Virus record (IMG/VR): IMGVR_UViG_3300043418_000072
Location: 290,099 to 354,098 of that record
Length of the DNA stretch: 64,000 bases
Reading direction: 5' to 3' (one strand)
The notes under the pieces were generated by a model. That model saw nothing but the letters and a program-made list of their open reading frames with translations. It ran no database searches and was not told the origin of the DNA. Shown here in pieces: positions 2,528-43,816 of the stretch. The position numbers were made by a program, and so were the translations under genes. Within the stretch, counting starts at the first letter, position 1; the number at the start of each line of letters is the position of its first letter.

Positions 2528-2603
2528 TGGTGCCTCTAACCGGATTCGAACCAGTGACACAAGGATTTTCAATCCTCTGCTCTACCAACTGAGCTATAAA
2601 GGC
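2528..2603 (-). tRNA. tRNA-Phe(GAA)
   Basis: Cloverleaf, loop TTGAAAA, CCA. Confidence 0.95.
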
Positions 2604-2706
2604 AAATTTAAATGGCATTGTGGGTTCCTACCACACCTGAACCTTGTTCCACCGCTCGTTCAAAGACTTATGTGGCGATCCCGTGCATTCGCATTACACC
2701 ATACCA

Positions 2707-2818
2707 TATAGAAGCACTCTCAAATGCAGGCATAGGAGGAGTCAAGCTCTGAAACTTTCGCATCTGCAGATACTAGGCTTCTTCTCCCGCTTTGACTTAT
2801 GCCAAGAATACTTCTATA
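2707..2818 (-). ncRNA. Long-stem structured RNA candidate
   Basis: Inverted repeat 2707-2720/2805-2818 plus inner GCATA..GTCAAG / CTTTGACTTATGC helix. Confidence 0.45.
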
Positions 2819-3045
2819 TAGGCTCCACCGTTAACGACAGCATTCGTCCTGGCTTTATTTTATGTCGGTTAATGCACGGTGGACACACATGCCGACGGGG
2901 TTACAGTTTCAATGATGGGATTCGAACCCACTAACTACCCGTGCGCTGCGGGTTGTGCTACGCTCAATATAAAACTGGTTTACTCTGTTTCGAACCAGAC
3001 CAACAGTATATCTTTGCACTATCTTTCCATGTCGTCTTCATTGTT

Positions 3046-3146
3046 ACCATATAGAAACACACTATGTGGAATCGAACCACTGACCCTTTCACTCCGTAGA
3101 GACCGTGCAATACGCTTAGTCGCCGACTAGTATGTTTTTATATGGT
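3046..3146 (-). ncRNA. Long-stem RNA with tRNA T-arm
   Basis: 19-nt inverted repeat (wobble pairs) enclosing GTGG-TTCGATT-CCAC. Confidence 0.55.
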
Positions 3147-3220
3147 AGAAGCACTGGGGCTCGAACCCAGGACCCTCGGATTAAAAGTCCGATGCTCTAA
3201 ACCAACTGAGCTATACTTCC
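3143..3220 (-). tRNA. tRNA-Lys(TTT)
   Basis: Cloverleaf, loop CTTTTAA, CCA. Confidence 0.95.
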
Positions 3221-3227
3221 ATGACCT

Positions 3228-3358
3228 TACCATATCAAAGTACGCTACGGAATCGAACCGCAGTCGTCAACCTTTCCCTCCAGGGCAATTGATACAATTA
3301 TAGCTTCCACAGGAGCGACCTGATTCACTATAATGCACTAGCGTACTTTGATATGGTA
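3228..3358 (-). ncRNA. Long-stem RNA with tRNA T-arm
   Basis: Perfect 20-bp inverted repeat taccatatcaaagtacgcta / tagcgtactttgatatggta; GCGG-TTCGATT-CCGT inside. Confidence 0.6.
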
Positions 3359-3428
3359 GGGGCACAGAGAATCGAACTCTGGTTCTCTGGTTAAAAGCCA
3401 GATACTTTAGCCGCTAAGTTATACCCCC
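3354..3428 (-). tRNA. tRNA-Lys(TTT)
   Basis: Cloverleaf, loop CTTTTAA, CCA. Confidence 0.93.
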
Positions 3429-3431
3429 ATA

Positions 3432-3506
3432 TGGTCCACAGCCAGAGAATCGAACTCTGTTAGCCCGGGTAAGAGCCGGGTACTTCGCCAGCAAAGTTTG
3501 CTGTGG
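3432..3506 (-). tRNA. tRNA-Lys(CTT)
   Basis: Cloverleaf, CCCGG/CCGGG stem, loop CTCTTAC, CCA. Confidence 0.9.
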
Positions 3507-3519
3507 ATGGATTCGTAAA

Positions 3520-3594
3520 TTACTTTTCTTTTACGTGCCATCCAGGACCATACGGGGGTCTAGGATGACACTATCGTTTACCTGAACGTTTCAT
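3520..3594 (-). other. Mini-ORF MKRSGKR-UAG followed by a hairpin (read-through would give MKRSGKR-X-CHPRPPYGPGWHVKEK)
   Basis: AGGA upstream; TAG at 3573-3571; hairpin TGTCATCC/GGATGGCA begins immediately after the TAG. Confidence 0.5.
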
Positions 3595-3608
3595 GACATT
3601 TTTCCTTT

Positions 3609-4280
3609 TTAATTCCAAAGTAAGTCAAAGTTGCCAGCTAACACTTTCTTAACGCTTGCAGTCTTGTCACTTACGTGATCTTTAACTGTATCGTCTTGAA
3701 AGCGGTATGTGCGAATTTTGTCTCCTCGCATCCCTGAACCAACTTGTTGCTTTCTGTTGCTTGCTAAGTTGTTATTATAACAGTCTTTTGTTATCTTGTC
3801 AACTCTTTCTCTAATAGTTTGCATGGCTTCTGCCAAACTATTTTCCCTACTGCGGCACTGTGCTGTTACTACTGTGCCGCTAGGTACGTGCGTAACACGG
3901 GCACTGTTTTGGTGCTTGTTACGGTGTTGTCCTCCTGCGCCTGTTCCGCTGTACCATTCAATCTTCAGATCTGAGTCAAGAATAGCAGTGGTCGGCACAC
4001 TTGGATCAACGACAGCGACAGTAACGGTACTAGTATGTACTCGTCCTTTTCGCTCAGTTGGTGGTACACGCTGTATTCGGTGTCCACCTGGCTCGTTGTA
4101 TAAGCCAGATAAATCAGCACCCTCGACTAAGATATGAACTTCGCCAAGATACTCATTTATCAGGCGGCTAGTTCAGCCCTTGCTGTGTGCAAATTTAATG
4201 TAGGCTTGCGCCAAGTCTTTTACAAATAGTTTACTGTCTTCGCCACCTTCTGCGGCACGGACTTCAATTACACGTTTCAT
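3609..4280 (-). CDS. prfA: RF1-like peptide chain release factor lacking domain 1, with in-frame UGA at codon 36
   Basis: Hand translation: IEVRAAEGG...SKG*TSR...EPGGHRIQRVPPTERKGRVHTS...GAGGQH...GSGMRGDKIRTY; PxT and GGQ motifs; TGA 4175-4173 is in frame with ORF 3609-3998. Confidence 0.9.
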
Positions 4281-4605
4281 ATTCATTTTTCTCTTTTAAT
4301 CGCATAGCTTCTAATCTTGCTTTCAAGAATAGTTCAACTACATCTTTATTTAACTTAGTAAATCCTGTCTTGATTAGAAAGAACAATTCGTCTTTTTCTG
4401 ACTCAAGCCATACCACGTGAGCATCACCTGTATTGCCCACTGCCCCAAGTCCTTCGGGGTTGCTGAATCTCTGTGCCGCGTTACAAATGAACGCAAACTT
4501 TACCCCAAAGTCCCTTGATAGTACTTCTGGACCAGTGGCCTCACCTTGGGCAATCCGGTACACATAGTTGTACTCGTACGGAACGTCAACGTAGACTTTG
4601 TGCAT
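4264..4605 (-). CDS. Hypothetical protein
   Basis: 113-aa ORF packed between phosphatase and RF gene, overlapping both. Confidence 0.65.
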   Translation of the reverse strand: MHKVYVDVPYEYNYVYRIAQGEATGPEVLSRDFGVKFAFICNAAQRFSNPEGLGAVGNTGDAHVVWLESEKDELFFLIKTGFTKLNKDVVELFLKARLEAMRLKEKNEYETCN

Positions 4606-5108
4606 TAGATATCACCTTCGTGGCTTGGGGGTAAAATGATACCACCTGCGCTGTATTGGTATGGTTGACCATTGATTGTTGGCTCTTCGTTCTCATCGTA
4701 TGTCCATCCCAGATGCTTCATCATGCGATGCTTGACTAGCAAGTTAGGAGCACGAAATGCTTCAGTGTCATCAAACCCAAGCATGACCCCAACTTCACAA
4801 ACTGCACCACTGCGGCAAACACCGGCATGGCAGTGAACAATCACGTTCATGCGATTCTCTAGTGCATGTTGCAACAAACGAACTAGCTCCGCAGCTTGCT
4901 CGTGACTGCAACGCATTTCTTCTTCAAGAACGTAGTCCTTTTCCTCTACATCGAGGAACTCAAATTGATGAACTTCTCTAAACTTGTAAAGGGGGGTAGG
5001 ACACTCGCTCCCGCAGTCAACAATTTGAATCAACATAGCGTTATCACCGGGGTTTATGTGAAACCCTTTAGTGACATCGCTACGTGCTACGTTTTGGATC
5101 CAGGGCAT
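4605..5108 (-). CDS. Dual-specificity / tyrosine phosphatase family protein
   Basis: HCHAGVCRS = CX5R loop; start reassigned to MPWIQ (AAGGA RBS). Confidence 0.8.
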   Translation of the reverse strand: MPWIQNVARSDVTKGFHINPGDNAMLIQIVDCGSECPTPLYKFREVHQFEFLDVEEKDYVLEEEMRCSHEQAAELVRLLQHALENRMNVIVHCHAGVCRSGAVCEVGVMLGFDDTEAFRAPNLLVKHRMMKHLGWTYDENEEPTINGQPYQYSAGGIILPPSHEGDI

Positions 5109-5280
5109 TTTGTTTCCTTGTGTTAAATACAGTATGAGCAAACCCAATCCTGGATTCGATGAATTACTTAAACTCGGCAACGGAACTTATTCCAATGCTA
5201 AGAGCTTCTCTTGTGTTAAACATTTTACACGAGATTATCCTGAAAAGCAAGATTTGCCTTTTGTACAGGATATGAAATTC

Positions 5281-6035: not shown

Positions 6036-6245
6036 TTAGTCGCGCAACTTTTTCAAGTACTCGCGGCCAATTTTTCCTTCTTCAATTTCTTTCAACACTG
6101 TTGCAGTGATGCCACCAGCGCCACTTACTTTTGCAGCATGTCCTCGCTTGAGTTCACGTGCTCGTGCGCTTGCAATAAGCACTAGATCAAAACGATTACC
6201 AACTTGGTCTACTGCTGCTGCTGAAGTGTTTCTACTATTTGACAT
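6036..6245 (-). CDS. rpoZ: RNA polymerase omega subunit
   Basis: VGNRFDLVLIASARAREL...TVLKEIEEGKI matches the RpoZ signature. Confidence 0.88.
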   Translation of the reverse strand: MSNSRNTSAAAVDQVGNRFDLVLIASARARELKRGHAAKVSGAGGITATVLKEIEEGKIGREYLKKLRD

Positions 6246-42193: not shown

Positions 42194-43816
42194 TTACTTG
42201 CTATAGAAGTTATCGTACAAGAATTGGTAGTGAGTAGGCAATGTCTCAATATGTGCCATTACTTCTTCTTTGTGCTCTAGCCACTTATCGTAGATTGTGG
42301 CTCGAAGTTCAGGCGACTCGTGACGTCTCACATCCTCATATCTTATATAATTTGGCTCCACGGGATTGTATCCCTGCCCTGCTGCAATATACAAAATCCC
42401 GCCCATGTTGTTATCAAATGTTCGAGTGCGGTGCATACGCATACCCAAGTCAGATGCAGATCGTACATCGTGTGCCAATCCAGACAAGTTAATAGTCCCG
42501 CCCATCGCTCGTGAATACGTTAAATCGCCTGTAACTTCTTTCCAGTACGGAGTATCGTTACGACAGCTTAGTGCATAGTGCTGACTAATAAAGTCTTTGA
42601 ATCCTAGAATCTGTTCTTGGAATCCATAGTTAAACAAATCAACATCGTAGTTACTAACAATGCCGTTACGCATTAACAGAGTATTGCATAATTTAACAAT
42701 GCCTTCGTGTGTTAGCATCAGTCCTGTACTTTCCAGTGGCTCAATGAAGCCATTAGCAAGACCGATGCCCACTACGTTTTTAACCCATGCACGCTCATGA
42801 ACACCGTGCTTGATCTTAATGTGTCGCACTTCGCATGATTCTGCTCGCTCTGCGTCCGGAAACATCATGCGATTGCTCTTTAGATGTTTGCGAAACTGCG
42901 CTTCTGCTTCTTCTTCAGTGGCATGTTTGCTGCTGTACACATAGCCTGTGCCGATGCGATTCCATAGCGGAATGTTCCATACCCATCCGCACTCAATAGC
43001 AGTGCATGATGTATAGTTTTCCATTTCTGCTTCTTTGTCAATATACGGAATGACTGTAGCAATCGCTCTGTCATTTAACAGTGTGTCATGGAAGCTAGTG
43101 AATGGCTCTTTGAGAGTTTGCTCTAATAGCAGACTCTTAAATCCAGTGCAATCAATAAACAAGTCTGCTTCTAGATATCCACTGTTCTCTGTCCCAATTT
43201 TTTCAATTGATCCATCTTCTCTCTGCACAACATCAGTTACTGTATCTAGTAAGTGCGTCATCCCACTCGGCAAGCACAGATTATCTCTAAGCCATGCGCC
43301 AAATAAGGTGGCATCCATGTGATATGCTGTGTCTTCACTAAAATTAAACCCACGAATTTTGTAATCCTCGTTTCGTGTCATTTTATTCTTATCCGTCATT
43401 AATATGCTGTCGTGATAAAACTCTGCAAAGTTGCTGGGATCAAGATTACCACGGTCGGCTGCTGCTAGGAACCATTCCATTGGGCCGCGAGGTTTATCTG
43501 TGAAATCTAAGATGCCAAAAGGATAATGAAACTTGTGCGGCTCCTCCTTTGGGTTTTCTCTAAAGTCAATGAACTTGATACTGGTCTTATATGTTGCATT
43601 ACATGCTGCCATCCAGTCTTCGTCCTTAATGCCAATTAATGCCAGATATTGATTAATATGTCCGATGGTACTTTCGCCCACACCAATGATAGGAATGTTA
43701 GGACTCTCAATGAGAGTTAGCTTAATGTTAGGTAGAAGCCTGGCTATTGCCGCCGCTGTCATCCATCCACTTGATCCACCGCCCACGATGGTAATTGATT
43801 TTACGTTATGGTGCAT
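42194..43816 (-). CDS. Tryptophan halogenase-family flavoprotein
   Basis: GGGSSGW, IGVGEST, FIDCTGF, GWVWNIP (WxWxIP), FIEPLESTG. Confidence 0.92.
   Translation of the reverse strand: MHHNVKSITIVGGGSSGWMTAAAIARLLPNIKLTLIESPNIPIIGVGESTIGHINQYLALIGIKDEDWMAACNATYKTSIKFIDFRENPKEEPHKFHYPFGILDFTDKPRGPMEWFLAAADRGNLDPSNFAEFYHDSILMTDKNKMTRNEDYKIRGFNFSEDTAYHMDATLFGAWLRDNLCLPSGMTHLLDTVTDVVQREDGSIEKIGTENSGYLEADLFIDCTGFKSLLLEQTLKEPFTSFHDTLLNDRAIATVIPYIDKEAEMENYTSCTAIECGWVWNIPLWNRIGTGYVYSSKHATEEEAEAQFRKHLKSNRMMFPDAERAESCEVRHIKIKHGVHERAWVKNVVGIGLANGFIEPLESTGLMLTHEGIVKLCNTLLMRNGIVSNYDVDLFNYGFQEQILGFKDFISQHYALSCRNDTPYWKEVTGDLTYSRAMGGTINLSGLAHDVRSASDLGMRMHRTRTFDNNMGGILYIAAGQGYNPVEPNYIRYEDVRRHESPELRATIYDKWLEHKEEVMAHIETLPTHYQFLYDNFYSK

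Follow-up and report, generated by a model that had tools for sequence, protein, structure and literature searches.

Leader-peptide attenuation is textbook for amino acid operons, as in trpL, hisL and pheL, and is known for one aminoacyl-tRNA synthetase operon, pheST, which is preceded by pheM. In these leaders, a short ORF led by a Shine-Dalgarno (SD) sequence carries codons cognate to the regulated product and lies directly downstream of a promoter. Overlapping alternative helices (1:2, 2:3, 3:4) are selected by the position of the ribosome, and the output is an intrinsic terminator. In the translation-arrest leaders of ermCL/ermC, cat and cmlA, a ribosome parked on a very short ORF by a drug-dependent arrest peptide melts one hairpin and exposes the ribosome-binding site of a downstream protein gene. 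T-box riboswitches are untranslated leaders of about 200 nt that bind uncharged tRNA directly through a specifier loop and a T-box sequence and end in a terminator or SD sequestrator. In prfB, a stop codon read by a single release factor (RF2) lies inside the factor's own gene and reports the activity of that factor through +1 frameshifting. The phage lambda bar minigenes (AUG AUA stop) act through peptidyl-tRNA drop-off in Pth-limited hosts. Phage tRNA-Lys genes rescue infection from tRNA-Lys-cleaving defenses, as shown for T5 tRNA-Lys against PARIS (PMC11464382) and for anticodon-loop variants (PMC10264068). No tRNA gene is known to be controlled by leader-peptide attenuation, and literature searches found no description of a cis-regulatory element inside phage tRNA arrays. 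Here, a leader module of uncultured freshwater jumbo phages is analyzed that resembles a leader-peptide attenuator whose inferred output is a tRNA.

Results

Architecture of the leader

The window is a 64,000-nucleotide stretch of IMG/VR record IMGVR_UViG_3300043418_000072 (positions 290,099 to 354,098), and all features lie on its minus strand. The original prediction described a seven-codon ORF ending in UAG, located between a release-factor (RF) gene and tRNA-Lys genes and followed by a hairpin whose 3′ strand can instead pair with the start of tRNA-Lys(CUU). Every one of these sequence statements was confirmed. The RF gene (3609..4286) stops at TAA 3611..3609, the SD sequence AAGGA lies at 3607..3603, 8 nt before the mini-ORF AUG, and ATG TCA TGA (3599..3591) overlaps the mini-ORF. 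The mini-ORF (3571..3594) begins with ATG at 3594..3592, continues with AAA, CGT, TCA, GGT, AAA and CGA, and ends with TAG at 3573..3571 (MKRSGKR).

Hairpin P1 (3535..3571) starts at the stop codon, and its first base pair uses the G of UAG. The basal 6 bp (GUGUCA/UGGCAC) are followed by a variable stem, a 2x2 internal loop, a 4-bp top and a CCCGUAU loop. P1 folds at -21.3 kcal/mol with z = -5.0 against shuffled sequences. Hairpin P2 (3515..3534) is an A/U-rich 5-bp spacer hairpin (GUAAA/UUUAC) that brings together the two strands of the alternative helix P3 (3504..3544). In P3, the UGGAUGG of the P1 3′ strand (3544..3538) pairs with its exact complement CCAUCCA (3510..3504), which spans leader positions -4 to -1 and tRNA nucleotides 1–3. 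P3 encloses P2 and excludes both P1 and the first 3 bp of the tRNA acceptor stem. The P2 plus P3 hairpin folds at -13.4 kcal/mol (z = -5.4), making P1 about 8 kcal/mol more stable than the alternative. Visual inspection for pairing between the P1 loop and tRNA loops gave nothing convincing.

ARAGORN places tRNA-Lys(CUU) at 3432..3506. This tRNA is atypical with C1-G72, C2-G71, A8 and an encoded CCA, and the Rfam tRNA model does not find it even at E ≤ 5. A tRNA-Lys(UUU) gene follows at 3354..3428. A perfect sigma-70-type promoter (TTGACA, a 17-nt spacer with TG, TATAAT; 12 of 12 matches plus an extended -10) lies at 3774..3802 inside the 3′ part of the RF gene, about 180 nt upstream of the mini-ORF AUG, and is the probable promoter of the leader and tRNA-Lys unit in this genome. 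No terminator-like site was detected between 3100 and 4400 on either strand, and no U run follows P1, P2 or P3. The RF gene encodes an RF1-type factor that lacks domain 1 and contains an in-frame UGA (4175..4173) at a Trp position. The genome also encodes a canonical amber-suppressor-type tRNA(CUA) (66.7 bits). Whole-genome TAG or TGA recoding was rejected as an explanation for the UAG or the RF UGA because in-frame continuation after TAG, TAA and TGA is equal at about 10%.

Conservation of the module

The core of the module recurs in at least 95 independent viral contigs, which is far beyond chance. In 87 of 95 members tRNA-Lys(CUU) follows, mostly 23–30 nt after P1, and tRNA-Lys(UUU) comes next in most members; the downstream genes are tRNA-Lys in all resolvable members. 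Among roughly 2,000 array tRNAs, no other tRNA type has such a leader: 75 of 78 tRNA-Lys(CUU) genes have it compared to a 0–12% background for the others. The only recurrent candidate for a second family of mini-ORF leaders (MQESAKL and similar) lies inside a tRNA gene and is an artifact.

The ORF (AUG AAA CGN ... AAA CNN UAG) is 6–9 codons long and in frame in 94 of 95 members, and its length varies only in whole codons. An SD is recognizable in 75 of 81 distinct members, spaced 5–8 nt from the AUG. Codon 2 is AAA in 79 of 81 and codon -2 is AAA in 81 of 81, so that AAA is used in 160 of 162 conserved Lys positions. Codon 3 is Arg in 76 of 81 members through CGU, CGA, CGC and AGA, whereas peptide positions 4 to n-2 and the last residue (R, L, Q, P, M) vary freely. 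The stop is UAG in 94 of 95 pattern-selected members, the exception being member L092, and in both extra copies found by the covariance model. Searches for TAA or TGA versions returned 88 hits in the viral contigs and 5 hits in the metagenome contigs, all of which were chance matches. Across the family, 19 of 79 members have a 12/12 promoter and 8 of 79 have an 11/12 promoter, and in 22 of these 27 the promoter ends 20–36 nt before the AUG. None of 60 control regions reached 11 matches. The promoter directly upstream in about a third of members places the ORF at the 5′ end of a primary transcript, as in attenuation-controlled operons.

Other features noted in the original prediction are not conserved. 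The Met-Ser-UGA overlap is present in only 35 of 81 distinct members and was rejected as a feature. Only 5 of 81 RF loci, in the lineage of the window, have the leader next to the RF gene; most leaders sit inside tRNA arrays, and the complete RF-bearing genomes G003 and G006 lack the leader. Hairpin length is 35–41 nt with no multiple-of-three constraint, the read-through frame runs 3–74 codons to a stop before or inside the tRNA, and the translated sequence is not conserved.

Competing helices and the predicted effect of ribosome position

P1 and P3 share a strand and both show compensatory changes. In P1, 98% of cells are paired in the lower helix and 87–89% in the upper helix, with UA↔AU and CG↔UA changes. 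The basal 6 bp and the YGUAY loop of P1 are invariant in sequence beyond what pairing requires, which suggests sequence-specific recognition by an unidentified factor. In P2, 68% of cells are paired, with GC↔AU changes at the closing pair. In P3, 87% of cells are paired compared to 35–58% for slid controls, with AU↔UA (47 versus 25) and UA↔GC (33 versus 19) changes, and P3 was not part of the covariance model used to build the alignment (A3). Cognate P3 pairs include AGGGAUGG/CCAUCCCU, UGGUUGG/CCAACCA and CUAGGGUUGG/UCAACCCUAG. P2 is duplicated in members L086, L170 and L176, where P3 is retained further downstream. All 53 distinct leader-linked tRNA-Lys(CUU) start with CC and end with GG-A-CCA, while positions 3–7 vary, a pattern that selection for P3 would produce. 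Two divergent copies (contig L005, 3564–3685; contig L178, 3618–3737) sit directly before tRNA-Lys(UUU) and keep the ORF, UAG and P1 but have no clear P3 onto the tRNA 5′ end.

The effect of ribosome position was modeled by folding 72 members with masked nucleotides. With 0–3 nt masked, P1 formed in 65–71 members and the acceptor stem was intact in 62–65. With 9–12 nt masked, corresponding to UAG in the A site, P3 formed in 66–72 members and the acceptor stem was intact in only 11–16. The flip falls between 5 and 9 masked nt, which is the step from the last sense codons to UAG. These data are thermodynamic modeling only.

Searches for related elements

Near and distant DNA searches of cultured phages returned only tRNA hits or nothing, with no blastn match to the element in 50,697 INPHARED phage records. 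The covariance model found nothing in PA5oct, the nearest cultured relative (TerL 53% identical). Rfam 15 searched at E ≤ 5 with positions 2590–3640 returned only tRNA and noise, with no T-box match, and literature searches found no description of the element. Genomes of 185,579 bacterial species contained only two true copies, both on small contigs in freshwater MAG bins (a Bacteroidetes bin and a Polynucleobacter bin). These are probably mis-binned phage fragments and at best a weak hint of the host. In metatranscriptome contigs from four RNA runs, the leader is present and its depth exceeds that of the flanking RF gene in three of the four, but depths sum over related phages, contig ends reflect variant branch points and DNA carry-over cannot be excluded, so no conclusion on transcript ends or expression is drawn.

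Discussion

The interpretation in the original prediction, a ribosome paused at the UAG or at the Lys codons that toggles tRNA-Lys folding or processing, or a hairpin that drives amber read-through, either of which would make the element a sensor of RF1 activity, is partly supported. The mini-ORF, its UAG, the abutting hairpin and the alternative pairing with the tRNA 5′ end form one conserved unit, and a ribosome-operated toggle is the best reading. Read-through and the link to the RF gene are not supported. RF1 sensing is neither demonstrated nor excluded, because UAG is nearly invariant but its G also closes P1, and the conserved AAA codons offer Lys decoding as an equally good or better input.

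The best explanation, held to be about as likely as not, is that the module is the leader of a self-contained phage transcription unit (strong sigma-70 promoter, SD, Lys/Arg-rich mini-ORF, P1, P2, tRNA-Lys(CUU) and tRNA-Lys(UUU)) and works as a ribosome-position-dependent RNA switch of the leader-peptide attenuator type. Four segments would compete: the P1 5′ strand immediately after UAG (1), the P1 3′ strand (2), leader -4 to tRNA +3 (3) and the 3′ acceptor strand of the tRNA (4). With no ribosome, or with a ribosome held at the AAA codon two codons before the stop, 1:2 (P1) would form, segment 3 would be free to pair with segment 4, and the tRNA would fold and be cut by RNase P. With UAG in the A site, segment 1 would lie in the mRNA channel and 2:3 (P3, nucleated by P2) would form, sequestering the RNase P site and tRNA nucleotides 1–3 so that the acceptor stem cannot close. 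The share of transcripts yielding mature tRNA-Lys(CUU) would then depend on how fast ribosomes reach the UAG and how long they stay there. In this view, the most likely physiological input is Lys (AAA) decoding capacity, a negative feedback that would raise phage tRNA-Lys output when lysine decoding is poor, for example after a host nuclease attacks tRNA-Lys, and the RF1-only UAG would lengthen the dwell. The analysis establishes the conservation, the covariation of both helices, the codon pattern, the promoter and the position of the thermodynamic switch point, whereas translation of the ORF, any effect on RNase P or tRNA yield, the nature of the signal and any response to RF1 concentration are inferences.

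Several features weigh against this model. Without an intrinsic terminator the output cannot be classical transcription termination and has to be inferred as misfolding or a processing block. The greater stability of P1 makes the P3 state transient unless an irreversible step, such as a nuclease or exonuclease, reads it. Only 2–3 Lys codons are present and not in a tandem run, and one is codon 2, where AAA is a general expression enhancer. The sensor codons are AAA, read by tRNA-Lys(UUU), whereas the directly gated tRNA reads AAG. The divergent copies lack a clear P3, and the invariant P1 base and loop suggest sequence-specific recognition by an unidentified factor.

A less likely alternative is the same switch with amber decoding as its signal, an extension of the original prediction. 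Dwell time at the UAG, or its suppression by the phage tRNA(CUA), would set the P1/P3 balance, and the module would report RF1 or suppressor status rather than lysine decoding. The near-invariant UAG, the lack of TAA or TGA versions in the collections searched, and the RF1-type factor and tRNA(CUA) of this genome favor this view. Among genomes at least 92% complete, the 3 with the leader have tRNA(CUA) and the 2 without it lack it, and tRNA(CUA) also lies within about 10 kb of the leader in contigs L170, L184 and L087. However, this co-occurrence rests on 5 genomes confounded by clade, only 1 of 4 incomplete leader-bearing genomes shows the suppressor, and there are too few complete genomes to decide co-occurrence with either tRNA(CUA) or the RF gene. 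The G of UAG forms the closing G-C pair of an invariant helix, so structure alone can fix UAG, RF adjacency is confined to the window's lineage, two complete RF-bearing genomes lack the leader, and read-through products are not conserved. This reading also offers no rationale for the strict linkage to tRNA-Lys or for the AAA codons.

It is doubtful that the module is not a regulator at all. In that case P1 and P2 would be processing or stability hairpins of the precursor, P3 would transiently hold the 5′ acceptor strand of an atypical, misfolding-prone tRNA until its 3′ strand is made, and the mini-ORF would only load ribosomes, for example to protect the 5′ end or keep the RNA unfolded. The atypical tRNA, the lack of a terminator, the divergent copies without a clear P3, and the stability of P1, which means the system ends in one state anyway, are consistent with this view. 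It does not explain why the ORF ends exactly at the base of P1 in every member, why the frame, SD and specific codons are kept, or why the predicted fold flips precisely at the UAG position of the ribosome, and roughly 2,000 other phage array tRNAs, some also atypical, lack anything similar.

It is very unlikely that the released leader (about 110 nt after RNase P cleavage) is itself the product, either as a small RNA with two hairpins or as a minigene whose basic hexa- to nonapeptide or peptidyl-tRNA drop-off acts on the host. The invariant P1 base and loop, the strong SD, the very short ORF and the metatranscriptome depth, with the caveats given above, fit this idea, but the peptide varies freely at positions 4 to n-2 and at the last residue, and P3 covariation with the tRNA 5′ end and the fixed C1C2 are not explained. 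Hairpin-stimulated amber read-through, suggested only by a stable hairpin directly 3′ of a UAG, is refuted as far as comparative data can go by the absence of a conserved frame, and a chance arrangement is excluded by recurrence and covariation.

A broader reading remains possible but tentative. Jumbo phages may carry a leader-peptide attenuator whose regulated structure is the tRNA itself, in which a ribosome translating a seven-codon Lys-rich ORF reports lysine-decoding capacity, for example after anticodon-nuclease attack on tRNA-Lys, and/or amber-termination status, and thereby decides whether atypical replacement tRNA-Lys molecules fold and are processed. This would be the first ribosome-mediated attenuation of a tRNA gene and a built-in sensor in the phage-host conflict over tRNA-Lys. 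If the model holds, phage tRNA supply would be regulated rather than constitutive, and the leader would be a compact, about 110-nt translation-operated switch acting on RNA folding or RNase P access. It would also link to current work showing that tRNA-Lys is a prime target of bacterial anti-phage nucleases and that phage tRNA-Lys variants rescue infection. The element is short, has a consensus sigma-70 promoter and should be directly testable in laboratory hosts or cell-free systems. Together with the RF1-type gene carrying a UGA and the amber-suppressor tRNA of the same genome, it suggests that this uncultured phage group manipulates decoding at several points.

The module shares features with each of the described systems. 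Like the tRNA-Lys genes that rescue infection, its tRNAs are phage-borne and sequence-atypical, and those genes give a plausible reason why lysine decoding would be worth sensing, but no leader ORF or switch is described for them. The lambda bar minigenes are also phage-encoded, SD-led ORFs of a few codons, but have no linked hairpin switch or tRNA gene. The logic of prfB, a stop codon read by one release factor as a sensor of that factor, is the logic of the original prediction; here, the UAG ends an independent mini-ORF that is not linked to the RF gene in most genomes, and no recoding product exists. T-boxes are likewise cis leaders that couple the status of a given tRNA or amino acid to expression of translation-apparatus genes, but they are not translated. 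The ermCL-type leaders share a post-transcriptional, non-terminator output from a ribosome on a very short ORF, but here the remodeled element would be a tRNA 5′ end, and no arrest motif or inducer is known. The attenuation leaders share the SD-led ORF close to an upstream promoter, the cognate codons and the mutually exclusive helices predicted to be selected by ribosome position, and pheM-pheST already applies this logic to a translation-apparatus gene. The phage module differs in having only 2–3 regulatory codons in a 6–9 codon ORF, in its location in a phage tRNA array and in that the regulated genes would be tRNAs. Its fourth segment is the acceptor strand of a tRNA and not a terminator, so the output would be RNA folding or processing rather than transcription termination.

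Organization of the leader and tRNA-Lys locus

The window is the last 64 kb of a 354-kb IMG/VR virus record. The virus is a jumbo myovirus with tail sheath, tail tube and terminase genes, and the nearest cultured terminase is that of Pseudomonas phage PA5oct at 53% identity. The genome carries 49 tRNA genes. Unusual cargo lies near the tRNA arrays (311-2511, 4605-5180, 6036-6245 and 42194-43816, all minus strand): an NMO/IMPDH-like TIM-barrel oxidoreductase, a radical SAM protein, a dual-specificity phosphatase-like protein, an Rpb6/omega-like RNA polymerase subunit and a tryptophan-halogenase-like protein.

The leader and its neighbors are all encoded on the minus strand. An RF1-type release-factor (RF) gene ends at TAA 3611..3609 and is followed by AAGGA at 3607..3603. 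The mini-ORF starts with AUG at 3594..3592, continues with AAA CGU UCA GGU AAA CGA and ends with UAG at 3573..3571. Hairpin P1 runs from 3571 to 3535 and its first base pair uses the G of UAG. A small A/U-rich hairpin, P2, occupies 3534..3515, and tRNA-Lys(CUU) runs from 3506 to 3432. The 3' strand of P1, UGGAUGG (3544..3538), is exactly complementary to CCAUCCA (3510..3504), which is leader -4..-1 plus tRNA nucleotides 1-3; this alternative helix is termed P3. P1 folds at -21.3 kcal/mol (z = -5.0) and the alternative P2+P3 hairpin folds at -13.4 kcal/mol (z = -5.4). The original prediction described an amber-terminated mini-ORF, an abutting hairpin and an alternative pairing with the first three nucleotides of tRNA-Lys(CUU), and this observation is correct as written.

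The RF gene (3609-4286) belongs to the RF1 type (prfA 155 bits against prfB 96; the PxT motif is PPT and GGQ is present), although domain 1 is missing. It contains an in-frame UGA at 4173-4175 that is conserved in 79/79 related loci in the context GG[CU] UGA [AG]C. In an alignment with uninterrupted homologues, the stop falls in a column that is Trp in 4-5 of 9 sequences, including a full-length RF1. The genome is not TGA-recoded, so expression seems to need UGA read-through as Trp, and the site may be a sensor of RF2 activity.

Two further regions downstream of the leader lack annotation. An RNA of about 130 nt between the two tRNA-Lys(UUU) genes (3221-3353, minus strand) is predicted to have a 19-bp closing stem, three inner arms and a T-arm-like hairpin (GGUUCGAUUCC). 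It folds at -53.8 kcal/mol (z = -5.3) and is recognized by neither ARAGORN nor Rfam. A 540-nt stretch without ORFs between tRNA-Lys(UUU) and tRNA-Phe (2604-3142, minus strand) holds several T-arm-like motifs and ACCAUAU-type junctions plus one weak Rfam tRNA hit (2907-2967, E = 0.75), and probably contains further tRNA-like or degenerate tRNA elements.

Conservation of the leader

A search with the RF protein returned 80 related viral loci. Only the near-copies of the window (loci L003 and L004) and two loci with 83-87% RF identity (L005 and L006) have the leader after the RF gene. In the latter two the peptide differs (MKRIAKM, MKRKSRKL), yet the SD, the MKR start, the UAG and a compensated hairpin persist. 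IMG/VR was then scanned with a pattern taken from the hairpin alone (GTGTCA..CCGTAT..TGGCAC). The scan gave at least 120 hits, and 95 of these 120 are true family members, which is a lower bound. The members have a 6-9 codon ORF in which AUG is followed by AAA, with AAG instead in 2 of 81 distinct sequences. In 94 of 95 the ORF ends in frame at UAG, and the exception, L092, has CGA-G at that position and stops at a UGA 9 nt later, inside P1.

ARAGORN finds tRNA-Lys(CUU) after P1 in 87 of 95 members. The distance is mostly 23-30 nt, and is 57-58 nt in the three loci where P2 is duplicated. tRNA-Lys(UUU) usually follows. Most remaining loci are truncated or have a CUU tRNA that ARAGORN misses. 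In one member (L114:3181-3296 and downstream) tRNA-Lys(CUU) is reduced to a short remnant hairpin, so the leader runs directly into tRNA-Lys(UUU). The upstream neighbor varies and is usually another tRNA (Cys, Ile, Arg, Phe, Asp and others) 21-300 nt away. The unit is therefore the leader plus the tRNA-Lys pair, embedded in tRNA arrays, and adjacency to the RF gene is a peculiarity of the lineage of the window. In L005 (2655-3685) the RF gene is flanked by two leader copies; the first is followed by only the 5' half of a tRNA-Lys(CUU), then the RF gene, then a second leader and a tRNA-Lys(UUU)-like gene. It looks as if the RF gene had been inserted into, or recombined with, the tRNA-Lys module.

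Among about 2,000 tRNAs in these arrays, 75 of 78 tRNA-Lys(CUU) genes carry an SD-led mini-ORF upstream, compared with 0-12% for every other tRNA type. One apparent second family of such leaders was rejected because it lies inside a tRNA gene.

The mini-ORF is conserved as codons

Conservation was examined in 81 distinct sequences, and the pattern is evidence that the ORF is read as codons. ORF length changes only in whole codons. Although an SD was scored in all 95 members of the initial scan, it is present at 5-8 nt in 75/81 distinct sequences. Codon 2 is AAA in 79 and AAG in 2, and the codon two before the stop is AAA in 81/81. Codon 3 is Arg in 76, encoded by CGU, CGA, CGC and AGA. The last sense codon starts with C but varies (Arg in 56, Leu in 18, and Gln, Pro and Met), and the middle codons vary among small residues. 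The original prediction also noted an overlapping upstream Met-Ser-UGA reading frame; this ATG-NN-ATGA overlap occurs in only 35/81 and is not a conserved feature.

Covariation in P1 and P3

The helices were evaluated on a MAFFT alignment and on a covariance-model alignment built with P1 and P2 only. P1 is 98% paired in its lower helix and shows UA<->AU and CG<->UA exchanges. P3, which was not in the model, is 87% paired against 35-58% when the partner is slid by 1-3 columns. The P3 covariation score is 0.192 against at most 0.119 for the slid controls, with AU<->UA (47 versus 25 sequences) and UA<->GC (33 versus 19) exchanges. Cognate pairs include UGGAUGG/CCAUCCA, AGGGAUGG/CCAUCCCU, AGGGUUG/CAACCCU, UGGUUGG/CCAACCA and CUAGGGUUGG/UCAACCCUAG. 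All four combinations of the two variable positions occur, so more than one evolutionary event is involved. In L086, L170 and L176, the members with a duplicated P2, P3 is preserved further downstream.

The leader-linked tRNA-Lys(CUU) (3432-3506) is atypical, with C1-G72, C2-G71, A8 and an unusual D arm, and the Rfam tRNA model misses it even at E <= 5. All 53 distinct leader-linked tRNA-Lys(CUU) sequences begin with CC and end with GG-A-CCA, although the rest of the acceptor stem varies with compensation. Selection for P3 would produce this pattern. The same genome (G000) has a second, canonical tRNA-Lys(CUU) at 281769-281841 that starts with G and has no leader.

Predicted effect of ribosome position on folding

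Seventy-two distinct members were folded from the U of UAG to the tRNA 3' end while increasing numbers of nucleotides were masked from the U of UAG, and structures were scored for P1 (>=8 bp), P3 (>=5 bp) and the acceptor stem (>=6 bp). With no mask, P1 forms in 71 members, P3 in 1 and the acceptor stem in 65. Masking 3 nt, which corresponds to a ribosome with AAA(-2) in the A site (reach about +11-12 from the P site), gives P1 in 65, P3 in 7 and the acceptor stem in 62. The corresponding numbers are 54, 18 and 53 with 5 nt masked and 27, 44 and 34 with 7 nt masked. With 9 nt masked (UAG in the A site), P1 forms in 6, P3 in 66 and the acceptor stem in 16, and with 12 nt masked the numbers are 0, 72 and 11. 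The flip falls between 5 and 9 masked nt. The predicted architecture is therefore set so that arrival at the stop codon, and not before, releases the P1 3' strand to capture the tRNA 5' end. This is a thermodynamic inference that ignores kinetics, tRNA tertiary structure and modifications.

Promoter and stop codon

A perfect TTGACA-17-(TG)TATAAT promoter sequence lies at 3802..3774 on the minus strand, inside the RF gene. Across the family, 19 of 79 distinct loci have a 12/12 promoter and 8 have an 11/12 promoter, and in 22 of these 27 the -10 hexamer ends 20-36 nt before the AUG. None of 60 control regions reaches 11. On this sequence evidence, in many phages the mini-ORF is thus the 5' end of a primary transcript made by host RNA polymerase. 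This is the layout of attenuation-controlled operons, and it allows a co-transcriptional race between ribosome and polymerase. No terminator-like site is present at the locus, so the output cannot be classical termination.

The hairpin pattern forced the G of the stop codon, and TAA and TGA versions were therefore sought separately. None of 88 hits in the viral contigs was a family member, and none of 5 hits in the metagenome contigs, where the AAAC-NN anchor was added, was a member. Two further copies found by the covariance model outside the pattern (L005:2655-2778 and L178:3618-3737) also end in UAG. Apart from L092, UAG is therefore invariant. Two explanations fit this invariance equally on these data: the G closes an invariant G-C pair of P1, and UAG is the only stop read by RF1 alone.

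The genome is not TAG- or TGA-recoded, and 25 of 301 long ORFs use TAG as a stop. It nevertheless encodes, outside the window, a canonical tRNA with anticodon CUA (G000:C1:174391-174465, minus strand; amber-suppressor type, 66.7 bits in Rfam) in addition to the RF1-type factor. A tRNA(CUA) is also found at L170:4320-4393, L184:2627-2703 and L087:5547-5620. Among the five genomes at least 92% complete, G000, G001 and G002 have the leader, the RF and tRNA(CUA), and G003 and G006 have the RF only; incomplete genomes are uninformative. The association of the leader with the suppressor is suggestive, but the sample is small and confounded by clade. ARAGORN alone also calls a putative permuted tmRNA with the tag peptide ANDSQFLMVA at G000:C1:179583-179981 (minus strand), outside the window.

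Discussion

The comparative data establish a conserved module, whereas translation of the mini-ORF, the operation of the module as a switch, the effect on the tRNA and the signal it responds to are inferred from that conservation and from thermodynamic modeling. The design matches a leader-peptide switch with four segments: the P1 5' strand, the P1 3' strand, the tRNA 5' end and the tRNA 3' acceptor strand. We consider it most likely, with moderate confidence, that ribosome position gates folding or RNase P processing of tRNA-Lys(CUU). Among the possible inputs, lysine (AAA) decoding is favored because of the strict tRNA-Lys linkage, the invariant AAA codon placed so that a stalled ribosome would just spare P1, and the analogy with cognate-codon leaders. 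Published work shows that tRNA-Lys is a target of anti-phage nucleases and that phage tRNA-Lys variants rescue infection (PMC11464382, PMC10264068), which gives a biological reason to sense lysine decoding. The model has weak points. No irreversible read-out of the P3 state has been identified, and P1 is about 8 kcal/mol more stable than the alternative. There are only 2-3 Lys codons, and the sensor codons are AAA whereas the gated tRNA reads AAG. Two divergent copies before tRNA-Lys(UUU) lack a clear P3, and the invariant P1 base and the loop hint at an unidentified binding partner.

The interpretation in the original prediction, that a ribosome paused at the UAG or the Lys codons could toggle tRNA-Lys folding or processing, or that the hairpin could drive amber read-through, with either making the element a sensor of RF1 activity, is partly supported. 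The RF1 or amber-status reading remains a live rival, although an unlikely one. A non-regulatory folding or processing role is less likely still, and a function of the released leader itself is doubtful, because neither explains the codon-exact geometry. Amber read-through is rejected, as far as the comparative data can go, because no read-through frame is conserved.

No Rfam family matches the element, no cultured phage among those searched carries it, and literature searches found no description. Only two copies occur in 185,579 bacterial and archaeal species genomes, both on small contigs of freshwater MAG bins. The element works, in the favored model, like a ribosome-mediated attenuator, but it lacks the terminator that defines that family, and its output, a tRNA, would be unprecedented.
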